A DNA stretch of 64,000 nt from Podarcis bocagei (lineage: Eukaryota): the NCBI GenBank assembly GCA_964188305.1, contig OZ076893.1; one strand, 5' to 3'. This document shows, piece by piece, positions 7,797 through 43,539 of the stretch (positions are counted from its first letter, which is position 1; each line of letters begins with the position of its first letter). The position numbers were made by a program, and so were the translations under genes. The notes under the pieces are model-generated. The model searched no databases and was not told where the DNA came from. It saw only the letters and a program-made list of their open reading frames with translations.

Positions 7797-8181
7797 TAGG
7801 TAGCCGTGTTGGTCTGCCATAGTCAAAATAAAAAAATTCCTTCCAGTAGCACCTTAAAGACCAACTAAGTTAGTTCTTGGTATGAGCTTTCGTGTGCATG
7901 CACACTTCTTCAGATACACTGAAACAGAAGTTGCCAGATCCTTCTATATAGTGAGAAGGTGGGGAGGGGTATTACTCAGAAGGGTGGTGGGAATGGGAGA
8001 TTGGCAGATAGCTGAGATGAGCCTGTTGACGACTCTTAACGACTGCAATAGGTCTTCCAGGAAAAGGCAAGGGGTGAGAAGGTGAAAAATGGCTTAGTCA
8101 TGTATAATGAGATAAGAATCCAATGTCTTTGTTCAAACCAGGTCTCTCCATGGTTTTGAGTTTGGTAATAAGTTGCAATTC
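7797..8181 (-). mobile_element. Penelope-like element 3' fragment (Neptune-type), 5'-truncated
   Basis: 8181-8098 translates ELQLITKLKTMERPGLNKDIGFLSHYT*, the PxGLN-type C-terminus of a PLE GIY-YIG endonuclease. A 3' region with a hammerhead motif follows. The left boundary is approximate. Confidence 0.75.
7880..7917 (-). ncRNA. Minimal type I hammerhead ribozyme motif (PLE-associated)
   Basis: Minus strand reads GTAT-CTGAAGA-A-GTGTG-CATG-CACAC-GAAA-GC-TC-ATAC. This gives the CUGANGA/GAAA core, a 5-bp helix II, a 4-bp helix I (GUAU/AUAC) and a palindromic AGCU helix III. Confidence 0.8.
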
Positions 8182-31736: not shown

Positions 31737-33379
31737 ACAGTATATCCTGGCTTCAGAGTAGGGGTGGGTGAATCTGTCAGTGTCCATTACTCTCGGTTTC
31801 TTATTTTTTCCCCAGCCTTAATTTCAATTCTCCACATTTCCACAACAGCCTGTACAGGTTGCATGTCTGGTGAATGGCATTGCAAAATTTCAAGAAGTAC
31901 ACATTTTGAAGGATGGCTGGGTTCAGTGGCATAGCATGGGTTGCCAGTGCCTGGGGCTGCGTGGAAAGGGTAGGTGGAAGGGAAGGAAGCGGATGGAGTA
32001 TGCATGTGCATTCAACTGCCTAACGGTGTCCATGTCACCCAGCAGACTACAGGTGCAGAGATAAGAAAAGGTGAGTCATTCCATTGTCTGGAGAGGTCCC
32101 TTCCTTGTTCACATGGAGAAGCCATTTTCAACAGAGTCCAGTAATGGAAGCCTACAGCTGTATTGAGGTATACATCAGGTGTTGAAATTTTACACCCCCT
32201 AACAAATTTGCGCCCAGGGCAACCATCCCTGTGCCCCCCCCCAACTGGCTGTGTCTCAGATATGCATAGTTTTCGAAGGTGTGAATTAAGTAGGTTCACC
32301 TTTAAATGTGAACTGAACCAAATTCTCCTCCATCCATACCTCAGAGCTTTCTCCTTATGCTAAGAAATTTGCCTTGCAAATGGAGATTCTGTTTACACAC
32401 CTGTTCCCTTTATCCTGACTGCTGCCTGATGCTGCTCCTGCCTCTGACCCCTGCTCAGAAATGAAACCTTCCCTCTGGTTCTGATCACATATGTCCCTGC
32501 GGGCTGTGAGATACTTTTTTGGAACGCAGCATTTCCTGATTAAAGCCAGGAACCCTTTTATGGACCCACACACCTAGAACAGACCCTTCTGGTATCTGGT
32601 AGTCCTTTTACCAGGTTCAGGTATTTTCTAATGGCAATTGGGAAATTGTGGCAGGGCTCAGTGTTGTTTCAATCATGGCTTCATTTCAAAGTCATTCATT
32701 TCAAAGTGGGCAGGGTGGGAAATGAGAGCTGTCCAGACCAAACTGACAAATAATTAAAAGTTGAAAAACAAACTGGAAGGTGATCAGGGATTGTTTTGTT
32801 AACAAGAAATACGTTGTTTGTGTACCTGTATACAATTAGCTGCTCCTTCTGCTGAATCAGAGGCAGTGTAGTTTTAGCATAGTTTTCCAAGTTTCCCCTA
32901 GCTGACTTCTCTGCACCAATAATTCCTTAACTGGGATCCATTTTCCTTGTTTTAATTCTGCCTTTGGTTCTATCCTTCTGGAGCCCAGATTTCCACGATG
33001 AAACCACTCCTAAACAATTCATTGCTGTTAGATTTTGGTTAAGAAGTACAACCCTGTTTATTCAATGAAAGTAATATGGAGGTTTGCTTTTCCAGCATTT
33101 AAGCAAGGGCTTAGGAGAAAGAAATCTGGGAGAGCTCCCTACATGCATTTCGAATCAATGCTGATTGAGAGATTAGGTTCACAACATTTATAGGAGAAAT
33201 GTTCCCCAGCATTCTGCAACTTGACAATCTCTTGTGTGTGTATATATATACTATATATATTTGCTTTCGTAGATTTTCACGGGTACAGGAATGCAGGTTT
33301 TGGTGTCTTCGGGTGTCTTCCCGTGTAAGAGTTGGGGTGTCTAGGCGACGTTTCGACGAGGTCTCACTCGTCATCTTCA

Positions 33380-34780
33380 AAACTAGATAGCTTCCTCACA
33401 CATCTCAACAGCCTACACCCCAAAATACAATTCACTATGGAAATAGAAGCCAACAACCAACTTCCCTTCCTTGACGTCCTAATCTACAAAAAACCTGATG
33501 GCTCCCTAGGACACACTATCTACCGGAAAAAAACACACACCAACCGCTACTTACATGCACAATCACACCACCACCCTGCACAAATAAACTCCGTAGCCAA
33601 GACTCTCATCTCCAGAACCAAACGCCTGGCTGACAAAGACCACTTGACAACTGAGTTACAGAATCTTTCAAATGTGTTAATCGCCAACGGATACCAGCAA
33701 AACAGGGTTACGAAGCTAATCCAAAAAGAAACACCCCCCAAAAAGCAAGACACAGAAGAAAACAATGGCATGGCCCTCCTTCCTTATATCAAGGGCACTA
33801 CAGATAAAATTAGCAAAATCCTCCATAAACACAATATCAAAACAGCCTTTTGCACCAACCAAAAAATAGCCAATATCCTCAGAAACCCCAAAGATAAAAT
33901 CCAGTTAGAAAACCAAGGGGTCTATGAAATACCCTGCAAAGTCTGCCCAGCCACGTACATTGGACAAACAAACAGACGAATAAATGCACGTATCGCAGAA
34001 CACAAGAATGCCGTCAAAAAAGAAGAAAAAACTTCCTCTCTTTACCAACACATGAAAGAAACAGGACACGAAATTAATTTTTCAGATTCCAAATTGCTCT
34101 TTAACATGGAACACCACCACAAGAGAATAATCATGGAAGCCATCGAGATAGAGAAACACCCTCACAACATGAACAAGCGTGACGATACGTCCCGCCTGCC
34201 AGACATCTGGAAAATAGCCCTCCCCACAAAAACCGACACCAGAACCAGAGGCACACAGAACGCCATCTCCAATCAACCACACCAGACCCAAACCCAGACC
34301 CTCTCCACAGATAAATTACAGACACCATCCAGTAGCCAAACCATAGTGGCACCTCCGGATGCTGCACCCCCCTGCAATCCCTACACAGATCTGGCTGGCA
34401 CAGGGCACAAAACCACAGCTCGCCCCTATACACGAAGCCAAGCCAGAGCACAACTAAGTGCAGTACAGCCATCTTCTCAGAAAAAACTCTTCACAAGGTC
34501 AAGAGGTCAAGACACGAAAGCTTTAGCAACTAATCCACACCTAATGACCCTCCTAAGTGGTACTCAGAATATCACTCAAGAAATCACTCAAGATATCCCT
34601 CAAGTAATTAATGAACAAAAGAAGAAAAGACACACTAACCTGGGAACTTCCTCTCTGCCCAGAACGTTGGAGGCTATACACCACACCCCCTCAACAGTAT
34701 TTATAGGAACTCAAACACTGAGATCCTGCTCTGTTCCAGTAACAAGAAGCCGAAAGCACCAGCCTGAAGATGACGAGTGA
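33380..34780 (+). CDS. PLE polyprotein, partial: C-terminal RT/thumb, GIY-YIG endonuclease, low-complexity C-terminal extension
   Basis: LNSLHPKIQFTMEIE...LPFLDV (RT end), YRKKTHTNRYL...SHHHP (thumb), GVYEIPCKVCPATYIGQT...RIAEH...EAIEI...NMNKRDD (GIY-YIG). The RT catalytic YxDD is lost to truncation. The first 16 codons of the listed ORF come from the inverted repeat. Confidence 0.92.
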   Translation, partial: KLDSFLTHLNSLHPKIQFTMEIEANNQLPFLDVLIYKKPDGSLGHTIYRKKTHTNRYLHAQSHHHPAQINSVAKTLISRTKRLADKDHLTTELQNLSNVLIANGYQQNRVTKLIQKETPPKKQDTEENNGMALLPYIKGTTDKISKILHKHNIKTAFCTNQKIANILRNPKDKIQLENQGVYEIPCKVCPATYIGQTNRRINARIAEHKNAVKKEEKTSSLYQHMKETGHEINFSDSKLLFNMEHHHKRIIMEAIEIEKHPHNMNKRDDTSRLPDIWKIALPTKTDTRTRGTQNAISNQPHQTQTQTLSTDKLQTPSSSQTIVAPPDAAPPCNPYTDLAGTGHKTTARPYTRSQARAQLSAVQPSSQKKLFTRSRGQDTKALATNPHLMTLLSGTQNITQEITQDIPQVINEQKKKRHTNLGTSSLPRTLEAIHHTPSTVFIGTQTLRSCSVPVTRSRKHQPEDDE

Positions 34781-34800
34781 GACCTCGTCGAAACGTCGCC
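34761..34800 (+). ncRNA. Minimal type I hammerhead ribozyme motif, copy 1
   Basis: GC-CTGAAGA-T-GACGAG-TGAGAC-CTCGTC-GAAA-CG-TC-GC. Core intact, 6-bp helix II, palindromic ACGU helix III, and a helix I of only ~2 bp. Predicted cut after C34797. Confidence 0.72.
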
Positions 34801-34922
34801 TAGACACCCCAACTCTTACACGGGAAGACACCCGAAGACACCAAAACCTGCATACTATATATATATAGGAACTCAAACACTGAGATCCTGCTCTGTTCTA
34901 GTAACAAGAAGCCGAAAGCACC

Positions 34923-34962
34923 AGCCTGAAGATGACGAGTGAGACCTCGTCGAAACGTCGCC
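34923..34962 (+). ncRNA. Minimal type I hammerhead ribozyme motif, copy 2
   Basis: Identical to copy 1 and 162 bp downstream. Predicted cut after C34959. Confidence 0.72.
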
Positions 34963-35010
34963 TAGACACCCCAACTCTTACACGGGAAGACACCCGAAGA
35001 CACCAAAACC

Positions 35011-35013
<3 letters not shown>

Positions 35014-35058
<45 letters not shown>
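35014..35058. repeat. (TA)n microsatellite abutting the PLE 3' end
   Basis: Read directly from the sequence. Confidence 0.95.
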
Positions 35059-35061
<3 letters not shown>

Positions 35062-35661
35062 AACTGATGCTGTGTAATCCTGATCTCCGTGTTATTTTAC
35101 AGTCTCTGAACAGCAGAATTGCATGACATTTTGAAAATGACACCTGGCAGGTGTCAGCTGCTGCTCAAGCCCGGTCAAGGGTGTTTTGTAATCCCAGGGG
35201 ATTCATGGTAGCTGTTGCTTCAGAATTATGCAGAGGAGAAAGGAGAGCATCAGTGGCAAAGACAGCTTGAACAGATGGAAAGATGCTCTCTCACCAAGGT
35301 TGCATTAGAAGACACAGGCACCCATGTGCCGAACTCTATTCTCTCTGGGCTCCACTGTTCCAAGCCTTCAGGCATGGCTTTCTTATCTGCCACAACTCAC
35401 AGGCAAAGGTAAACACAGAGGATTGCAAACAGGCATTTTCATCACACTCTCCTAATCTCAGGCTTCTCTCAGGAAATATGGTTGGCAACAGACCAGCAAA
35501 ATGATTGGGCAGGCTCCTTTAACTAGGGCTGTGCATCAGATTTGGTGGAAACCAAAACTAAATTGGACTGATTCAGGAGACTCTGGGCATCAGTCCAGAT
35601 GGGCTGAAATAGCCCTGGATGACTATGGGTTGAATTGCATGGTCCAGAGCAATTCAGGGGA

Positions 35662-41130: not shown

Positions 41131-41673
41131 GCCGATGTCTGCCCTGCGCGAGGGGCGCTCTGCATCAGGGCGCCCCCCTGCGGGGCGGCAGGCTGCTATC
41201 CGCAGCATGGGGAGCCTTGCCGGGAAGTCCGGCAAGGCTCCCCACGCTGCGGATGTCTGCCTGGCGAGGGGGGCGCTCTGCTTTAGGGCGCCCCGCCCGC
41301 CGGGCGGCAGGCTGCTATCCGCAGCGTCGGGAGCCTTGCTGGGAAGTCCGGCAAGGCTCCCCACGCTGCGGATGTCTGCCTGGCGAGGGGGGCGCTCTGC
41401 TTTAGGGCGCCCCGCCTGCTGGGCGGCAGGCTGCTATCCGCAGCGTGGGGAGCCTTGCCGGGAAGTCCGGCAAGGCTCCCCACGCTGCGGATGTCTGCCT
41501 GGCGAGGGGGGCGCTCTGCTTTAGGGCGCCCCGCCCGCCGGGCGGCAGGCTGCTATCCGCAGCGTCGGGAGCCTTGCCGGGAAGTCCGGTGAGGCTCCCC
41601 ATGCTGCGGATGTCTGCCTGGCGAGGGGGGCGCTCTGCTTTAGGGCGCCCCGCCCGCCGGGCGGCAGGCTGCT
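41131..41673. repeat. 119-bp GC/CpG-rich minisatellite, ~4.6 units, each with internal hairpins
   Basis: GGCTGCT recurs at 41191, 41310, 41429, 41548 and 41667. Confidence 0.95.
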
Positions 41674-43539
41674 CACCTCCGCCCCTCGCCTCCACCCCTC
41701 GCCTCCTCCCCTCGCCACCGCCCCGGAGCCGCAGCAAAGGCTTTAAAGAGCCGCATGCGGCTCTGGAGCCGCAGATTGCCGACCCCCGGCCTAGGAGGAG
41801 GAGCATTTGTTGTTTTGCCTCCACCATAGTCCCAATCCAAATCCAGGTCTCCCCACACCTGCTCTCTGCAATAGGGGGAAGCACCCATTGGTCCTGGGTT
41901 CAGCTCTGGGTTGTGCTGGGGGCAGGGGGTTAAAATTCTGCCCTCAGCACCATGGCCCAGATCCAGTTCAGAAGCCCAGTGCTAGTTAACTGTTTTTAAA
42001 AATTCACACAAGGCCAAACAATAAGAACCATGGGTTGTAGCCATGGCAGTCTTACTCACAGTTGACCCATTAAAGCTAATAAACAGGACTACCCACTTCT
42101 ATGCTGAGTAGGACTAGCACTGCATGCAAAACCTTATCTTTTCTGGTTTGGCCCTAAGCTGAAACAAGCACCGTGAACTAATAACCAAACTTAGATACCA
42201 AAAAACTTTCAACTCAAATTTGGGAGGCAGGTAAAAATCACCAAACTGTGTGGTGGATTTTTAATGAGGAACCTGTTGGTCTCTCCATTAAAAGAAGCAG
42301 AGCTGATTGTTCCTTTATTTTGTAAAGCCTATTTTCCCCTGAAGGCGGCGGCAAAGCAGCACCTGCCATTAACCCTGTAGGCTTTTTCTCTCCTGGACAT
42401 GGTGTTGTTCCAGAACATTATGAGGAATGAAAATGGCAGCCAACACAAAAAAGGCTCCCTCAAGTGAGGTGGCAAATGTGAGGTGGATTTCCCAGCAGCT
42501 CTAAATAACGTTATTTGGGGGAGCAAAAGTATTGTCATACTGAGTCCTATCAAAGGTCTTTCAAGATCACCATTCCAGATAGGCAGGTAGTTCAGAGCTT
42601 AACATTTAACTATTTGGAACATTTCCCATTTAACTGAAATGCATGAGTGATGACTACTTTAGATGAATGAGAACATAATAACATTAATAAAGAAATAAAG
42701 AAAAGCTTTACTAAAGAGGCAGATGGCTTAATTACTTGCAGTTTTCAGTAATACTTCCTATTGGCATTCTTAAGAACCCAGCACAAGGGAATTGTATCTA
42801 AATTCTATCATCATAATGTTTCCCCTCTGAATAAAGCAAGAACGAACTACAGAGGAGCGGTCGTTACATTGCTATGAAGTAAACTTGTTTCCCATTCAAT
42901 TGCCTGGTCAACATCTCAATGGCTCAGTTCAGAGGAAACTGGAAACCATGGTTTTAACCTTACAAGAACATGTCACTGGCAGAGTCTCTTAATCCTACAT
43001 GCATGCAGTGGCAGTAGCTGTTAGAAAAACTACAACTCCCAAGAGCTTACTAGAGAGGAAGGGGACCAAGAGATCCAATCTGTTTTCATCTCTTATCATG
43101 GCTAGAATAGTTGCTGCTATTCCCACTACACTGCCCAGTAACAATGATTTAAAAAGAAGTCAAAGAGTTTTGAGGGGAATAGGGTGTTTCTGTTAGTATT
43201 CTTCTCCAGCACAATTTTAATCTGAATTTGAGAAGAATTTGAGGGTATCATAAAGCTCATCTCTCATTTGAGAGGTTCATAAAGCTTTCCCCCTCCCTTA
43301 TATCCCAGCTGAAGATCAGAGATCTTCACCAGGATCTGCAATCGAAAATGTTATTAACACCCTGTCTTTCACAACGCTTTTTGAGATATATGTGTATTTT
43401 CATAACTTCCATAACCACCCCTCCTTGAAATTCATTTCTTGGGGTTATTTACACATGTTTTTCCAAGGAACTTGGTTGTAGCAGAGCCAAAACATTTGCC
43501 TGTAGTTCTTTAAATCCCTCCTCACAAGTAAAGCACTTC

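Follow-up and report, generated by a model that had tools for sequence, protein, structure and literature searches.

Tandem Minimal Hammerhead Ribozymes in a Composite Penelope-Like Element Locus of the Lizard Podarcis bocagei: A Probable Outcome of Repeated Insertion

Introduction

The minimal hammerhead ribozymes (min-HHRs) of metazoan Penelope-like elements (PLEs) lie in the terminal repeats of these elements, and they often have a neighboring copy on the opposite strand (Cervera & de la Pena 2014, PMC4209133). They are defined by a long helix II and a short helix I, the latter generally 4–5 bp and 2 bp in Drosophila virilis. A conserved G10.1–C11.1 pair and either palindromic positions 15.x–16.x or a small palindromic insert complete the definition; an unpaired nucleotide between A9 and G10.1 has been described, as have opposite-strand motif pairs 100–700 bp apart. 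Metazoan PLE hammerheads cleave poorly even as dimers (PMC4209133).

The closest tested relative of the element described here is PAc, the Poseidon element of Anolis carolinensis (Frangieh et al. 2024, PMC11167929), which belongs to the same PLE clade and also has a lizard host. PAc has two adjacent reverse-transcription start sites in a stem-loop that is AC-rich, 111–118 bp into the ORF, and an optional “tail” of 30–40 bp. Its protein prefers AT-rich DNA for cutting and cuts both strands. The PAc hammerhead is cleaved only when this protein is present, the compensatory C3G/G8C mutant restores activity, and no in vivo RNA-seq reads end at the cut site (PMC11167929).

A further group of related systems is formed by the non-LTR retrozymes and newt satellite 2 (Cervera & de la Pena 2020, PMC7229834; Li et al. 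2026 preprint). These consist of tandem type I hammerheads with a weak palindromic helix III, presumed to act as dimers, in units of ~170–400 nt, and they are thought to derive from PLE terminal repeats (pLTRs). To count as an active non-LTR retrozyme under one operational definition, a locus must hold two or more units in tandem, all of them with a type I hammerhead of the canonical or minimal kind (Li et al. 2026 preprint).

The window analyzed here, a 64-kb stretch of Podarcis bocagei DNA, contains two identical hammerhead motifs in tandem. An earlier note took them to be minimal ribozymes in the two pLTRs of one Penelope element, arranged for dimeric self-cleavage. The present analysis favors a different reading, in which the motifs are genuine Poseidon-clade min-HHRs in a dead composite locus, probably brought into tandem by repeated insertion and with an activity that is predicted only.

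The window motif shares with PAc the layout CUGANGA-U-G10.1...C11.1-GAAA-CG-UC, a start codon formed by A9-U-G10.1, and a cut 25–26 nt after the ATG. The same layout is found in the PAc consensus across the unit junction, CTGAGGA-T-G...C-GAAACGTC (PMC11167929 supplement). Helix I is short in both, with 3 bp as read from the PAc consensus and 2 bp in the window, and both elements have AT-rich targets and two alternative 3′ ends ~30 nt apart. The two differ in the sequence of helix II and loop II, and a 126-nt untranslated stretch precedes the motif in PAc, whereas the ORF extends into loop II here. PAc is the one of the two tested at the bench. The D. virilis Penelope hammerhead resembles the window motif in its terminal-repeat location and opposite-strand neighbors, but its helix II contains a bulge and an intron boundary falls at its helix I, features that the window motif does not have. 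The tandem of type I hammerheads with a weak palindromic helix III is held in common with the retrozymes, and the unit size of 162 nt is similar. Unlike the retrozymes, the locus has two units only, its hammerhead is minimal and without loop–loop tertiary contacts, and its unit is coding sequence of the parent element that is not highly self-paired.

Results

The 64-kb window holds exactly two copies of the motif CTGAAGA-T-GACGAG-TGAGAC-CTCGTC-GAAA-CG-TC, at 34764–34797 and 34926–34959, both on the plus strand. The 34 nt of the motif have no match across 100 dinucleotide-preserving shuffles. The repeat that holds the motif has a period of 162 and 2.0 copies with 98% matches (34698–35028, Tandem Repeats Finder), with a single difference between the two units over 157 positions. 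Repeat and motif searches agree exactly on the two identical motifs, 162 apart at 34764 and 34926, that the earlier note had reported. Elsewhere in the window, and unrelated to the PLE, positions 41131–41767 hold a GC-rich tandem array with a period of 119 nt, 4–5 copies, and internal inverted symmetry.

In hammerhead 1 (34764–34797), the core CUGAAGA (34764–34770) is followed by an extra U (34771) between A9 and G10.1, a 6-bp helix II closed by a G–C pair (34772–34777 with 34784–34789), GAA (34790–34792), the palindrome ACGU of helix III (34793–34796), and C17 (34797). Hammerhead 2 (34926–34959), recovered by both motif search and covariance model, is identical and has C17 at 34959. Direct reading finds the core intact in both motifs: C3, U4, G5, A6, A7, G8, and A9; G12, A13, and A14; A15.1–U16.1; and C17. 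Cleavage is predicted after 34797 and 34959, and the cut sites had been placed correctly. The palindromic ACGU is also able to form a 4-bp helix III between copies, as had been claimed and as in the published dimer model (PMC4209133).

Helix I at both motifs consists of 2 bp (G–C and C–G) followed by an A·C mismatch. The weak helix I that had been noted is seen here, at 2 bp; alternative registers with bulges, inspected by eye, gave nothing stable. With helix I open, the motif has no loop 1. A third copy of the motif, missed in the earlier note, lies on the minus strand at 33347–33379, where it is truncated at U4 and is without C3.

The class of the motif was assessed against a related set of 83 PLE loci (380 kb). 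A simple descriptor scan of the 380 kb found 31 hammerhead matches; reversed sequence gave 1 and shuffled sequence 0.2. A covariance-model search found 43 matches in the 83 loci. The core is common to all 27 distinct motifs, whose helix sequences are completely different. Nearly all of them (26/27) carry the extra nucleotide, 23/27 have G–C at G10.1–C11.1, and 16/27 have ACGU, with ACAUGU, ACGCGU, AGCU, or AUGCAU in the remainder. The motif of these relatives is located 30–740 nt downstream of the endonuclease match, and the window motif likewise lies downstream of a reverse transcriptase (RT)/GIY-YIG ORF on the same strand.

Covariation of helices I and II is seen in 24 related elements, and the core is invariant in relatives. 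Pairing in helix II amounts to 91%, compared with 55% for shuffled sequences and 24–44% with partners slid; the figure is inflated because the scan demanded at least 4 bp in this helix. For helix I, which played no role in sequence selection, pairing reaches 78% against 44%; 0 of 500 shuffles came that high, and sliding the partners gave 25–44%. Its first pair is kept in 15, its second in 16, and its third in 14 of 17 sequences. Helix I of the window is one pair shorter than the usual 3 bp of the family because its third pair is A·C.

Covariance model R1 was built from 15 distant relatives and includes none of the window's own family. It matches both sites at 34.9 bits (E = 6.8e-7) and the truncated inverted copy at E = 2e-4. 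The Rfam hammerhead models (Hammerhead_1 and its clan) gave no match at the gathering threshold in the whole window and none at E ≤ 10 within 34500–35200. This blank probably reflects a limit of the curated models, which presumably require a true helix III and more base pairs in helix I, and is not taken as evidence against the motif. Model R1 also matches an unrelated PLE-type hammerhead in the window (7876–7921, minus strand, E = 1.5e-3), which has CTGAAGA-A, a 5-bp helix II, GAAA-GC-TC, and a 4-bp helix I.

The two motifs display the core, unpaired nucleotide, G10.1–C11.1 pair, long helix II, palindromic helix III, terminal-repeat location, and profile match of PLE min-HHRs. Given the covariance-model matches and the covariation of helices across relatives, membership in this class is established by sequence and structure, whereas catalysis itself is predicted. 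The earlier assignment to PLE-type minimal type I hammerheads is thus sound. The features presented there as special, namely the extra nucleotide, 6-bp helix II, 2-nt palindromic helix III insert, and 2-bp helix I, are not, since all have been described for PLE hammerheads and recur in relatives.

The ORF directly upstream of hammerhead 1 has 482 codons (33332–34780). Its part at 33380–34780 (plus strand) encodes a C-terminal portion of RT, a linker, a GIY-YIG endonuclease, and a long C-terminal extension, while the N-terminal portion of RT is absent by 5′ truncation. The GIY-YIG match (E = 4e-4) falls below the Pfam cut-off. The ORF protein has 93% identity to a Podarcis muralis protein and hundreds of homologues with RVT_1 and PF26215, and is collinear with the Poseidon_Ac protein as judged by eye. 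The host element is a 5′-truncated Poseidon-clade PLE whose family is found in lacertid lizards. It has the Penelope/Poseidon features of RT followed by GIY-YIG in one ORF (5′-truncated here), a 3′ “tail” with alternative ends, and an AT-rich target. Close PLE homologues are also present under bacterial or metagenome labels (P0050, P0115, and many JGI/ENA matches), including an E. coli “hypothetical protein” and an alphaproteobacterial MAG; such entries most likely stem from eukaryotic DNA that contaminates those assemblies.

The ribozyme of this lacertid PLE family spans the junction of successive ORF units. The upstream stop, TGA, is in loop II of hammerhead 1, as it is in P. muralis and Logan copies, and the next ORF starts at the ATG formed by A9-U-G10.1 (34770), with a frame that begins MTSETSSKRR. 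Because A9-U-G10.1 is the ATG that opens this ORF, the extra U is the middle base of a start codon. In the inverted copy the ATG frame is open for ~38 codons, up to the TA tract. With the upstream ORF open into loop II of the hammerhead, the lacertid-family unit has almost no non-coding “pLTR”. Six same-family copies were compared and their hammerhead is invariant, but this invariance carries no weight because the copies are very similar overall.

The start of the next ORF unit (34770–34853, plus strand) comprises the ATG, an AC-rich hairpin, and the 3′ end of the short tail, CTGCAT, which is the presumed reverse-transcription start site. This assignment draws on the translation, on other copies that end at the same base beside (TA)n, and on the layout of PAc (PMC11167929). 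Tails of the family end either 84 nt (short) or ~115 nt (long) after the ATG, every copy ending beside (TA)n at one or the other, and these ends match the two start sites and optional tail of PAc.

The lacertid family ORF (window 33380–34780; L001 6864–8975; L083 232–1338) has ~190 low-complexity codons open past the endonuclease and ends with the TGA in loop II, 11 nt after the ATG of the next ORF. In relative L002, the UGA within the CUGA box itself serves as the stop codon. At about codons 8–9 of the PLE ORF, the core GAAACGU imposes Lys-Arg, as in SKRR, PKRR, SKRW, and SKRL, and Lys-Arg is kept in relatives with a different helix II and hence different neighboring residues.

The locus is bounded on the left by ATACTATATATAT (33248–33260), which lies in a TA-rich tract and is the longest string common to the left flank and the inter-unit spacer. 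Next to it, on the minus strand, is an inverted tail fragment of the same PLE (33261–33379) with the U4-truncated hammerhead (33347–33379), the first ~38 ORF codons, and the optional 30-nt “tail” extension. The fragment was identified by complementarity, its translation (MTSETSSKRR), the R1 match, and alignment to a minus-strand copy of P. muralis; 89 nt of it (33291–33379) are 100% complementary to 34765–34853. It meets the truncated ORF head-to-head at 33379/33380. The 5′ edge of unit 1 is internal element sequence, as other family copies read on continuously through ...TATTTATAGGAACTC....

The 14-nt spacer between the units contains the second copy of the 13-mer (34852–34864), the first 2 nt of which overlap the tail end. 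The 10-nt core of the 13-mer, ATACTATATA, occurs at only these two places in the 64-kb window, in low-complexity TA sequence where the duplication is distinctive by a single C interruption only. From sequence, the pair is read as a target-site duplication of 11–13 nt around a composite insertion at 33261–34851.

The second unit (34868–35015, plus strand), recognized from the repeat and by alignment, is a severely 5′-truncated PLE 3′ end of 148 nt. It starts at GGAACTC (34868), right after TA repeats, and meets the TA tract at a TATA microhomology; upstream of GGAACTC, other copies have element sequence where (TA)n is present here. On its other side, tandem-repeat search finds a (TA)22 microsatellite (35014–35058), the AT-rich target beside the 3′ tail, and P. 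muralis and Logan family copies likewise adjoin (TA)n. Since the second unit lies outside the duplication of the first insertion, it is most likely a separate 148-nt insertion. The idea of two pLTRs of one element arranged for cleavage is not supported, given that the 13-nt duplication puts the second unit beyond the first insertion.

The 83 related loci yielded no other short same-strand tandem, and neither did the P. muralis copies. Opposite-strand motif pairs in the descriptor scan have the minus copy on the left and the plus copy on the right in 7 of 8 cases, and several were recovered by the covariance search. Head-to-head pairs with 3′ tails pointing outward are seen at L001, L004, L019, L039, L049, L066, and window 33261–34853, with L042 as the exception. 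Such pairs suggest that reverse transcription is primed from both ends of the cut target, and their orientation fits this priming because PAc cuts both DNA strands.

Folding gives the double hammerhead −18.1 kcal/mol and two separate monomers −23.2 kcal/mol, so that the dimer is ~5 kcal/mol worse in a nearest-neighbor model that takes no account of tertiary contacts or protein. Helix II forms in every fold of the monomer, the two-strand dimer, and the 319-nt two-unit RNA, and the inter-copy helix III forms in none, as expected for a long-range helix of 4 bp. The 162-nt RNA between the cut sites is not unusually structured (z = −1.28). Logan contigs L083 and L002 of the same family, whose source may be DNA or RNA, served as a proxy for in vivo cleavage; both are continuous through the motif, with no end at the predicted cut site, and are thus uninformative. 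The 2-bp helix I makes it probable that any cleavage would be slow or would depend on the PLE protein. Dimeric self-cleavage through ACGU at this dead locus is possible in principle, and it is unlikely to be efficient in view of the unfavorable modeled energy, 2-bp helix I, poorly cleaving relatives, protein dependence of PAc, and a 162-nt RNA that is not unusually structured.

Discussion

The order and number of insertion events can be inferred from the duplication and the anatomy of the copies. In the first insertion (33261–34851), an inverted tail fragment would have been joined head-to-head to a 5′-truncated copy, with priming from both cut DNA ends. A second event would have added the 148-nt 5′-truncated copy to the same (TA)n microsatellite, just outside the duplication. 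The tandem hammerhead pair would then have been left behind by insertions that recurred at an AT-rich hot spot, without selection for the arrangement, which is probably incidental. If a read-through transcript of both copies were made, the ACGU palindromes could pair and give a composite double hammerhead of the class.

Competing explanations concern both the identity of the motif and the origin of the tandem. Chance resemblance to a loose hammerhead consensus, with no RNA function, would agree with the lack of any match in Rfam, but has a negligible probability: the motif is an exact repeat with 0 shuffle matches, descriptor matches are enriched, model R1 finds it at E = 6.8e-7, and 43 matches occur in 83 loci. 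The covariance-model matches, together with the covariation of a helix I that was not selected for, effectively refute it. The tandem might also have come from a single event, through template switching by the RT or the copying of an RNA with two tails, in which case spacer and duplication would be coincidental TA-rich sequence. PLEs typically occur as partial tandems, and the near identity of the three copies at the locus fits one origin. Such an event is unlikely, if still credible, as the spacer repeats the unique C-interrupted 13-mer of the left flank, as would be expected if it were target DNA but not if it came from the template, and the 5′ end of unit 2 is at a TATA microhomology with the microsatellite. 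Repeated insertion is therefore preferred as the origin of the pair.

The remaining alternatives bear on what the motifs do. They may be kept mainly as a protein binding or positioning site near the reverse-transcription start, or by the overlapping start and stop codons, with a hammerhead shape that is catalytically marginal. PAc hammerhead mutants left in vitro insertion unchanged, its cleavage is protein-dependent with no in vivo cut-site reads (PMC11167929), and the window motif overlaps both an ORF stop and an ORF start. A role of this kind is nevertheless rather improbable given that all catalytic-core positions are invariant in relatives whose helix sequences differ completely; their peptides differ as well, so that coding constraint does not by itself account for this invariance. 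The C3/G8 compensatory mutants restore cleavage of PAc (PMC11167929), and its fold is therefore catalytically competent. The pair could also be functional, in that a read-through RNA folds into a double hammerhead, is cut after 34797 and 34959, and yields a 162-nt RNA that circularizes as a retrozyme-like, non-autonomous unit from a PLE tail. The locus does have two complete and identical hammerheads in tandem, an ACGU that allows a 4-bp helix III between copies, and a unit that includes the presumed reverse-transcription start site; as both of its consecutive units contain a complete type I hammerhead, it falls within the operational definition of the 2026 preprint. It does not have a canonical hammerhead with loop 1–loop 2 contacts or a highly self-paired unit of ~170–400 nt, as its 162-nt RNA has z = −1.28 whereas retrozyme circular RNAs are highly self-paired. 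Also against it are the duplication, which indicates two separate insertions, the absence of a short same-strand tandem in the 83 related loci or P. muralis copies, the 2-bp helix I, the unfavorable dimer energy, and PAc, in which cleavage needed protein and no RNA-seq reads end at the cut site (PMC11167929). Function of the pair as a whole is accordingly very improbable. Because the 162-nt unit carries both a hammerhead and the PLE reverse-transcription start site, it could in principle be excised, circularized, and mobilized in trans. There is a slim chance at best that the locus represents the birth of a retrozyme-like unit, with serial 5′-truncated PLE tails in one (TA)n tract leading to a direct dimer.

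Conclusions

The two hammerheads are unremarkable representatives of a ribozyme class that was already on record for PLEs, and as such they add a lacertid-lizard PLE family to the catalogue of minimal hammerheads. One small locus displays the published hallmarks of PLE insertion: its target is AT-rich, reverse transcription has two alternative start sites, and copies stand head-to-head. No new question is raised by the locus, and its wider value depends on whether short tail dimers prove to be seeds of animal retrozymes. If they do, serial insertion of PLE tails into one (TA)n tract would offer a concrete route from PLE pLTRs to non-LTR retrozymes.
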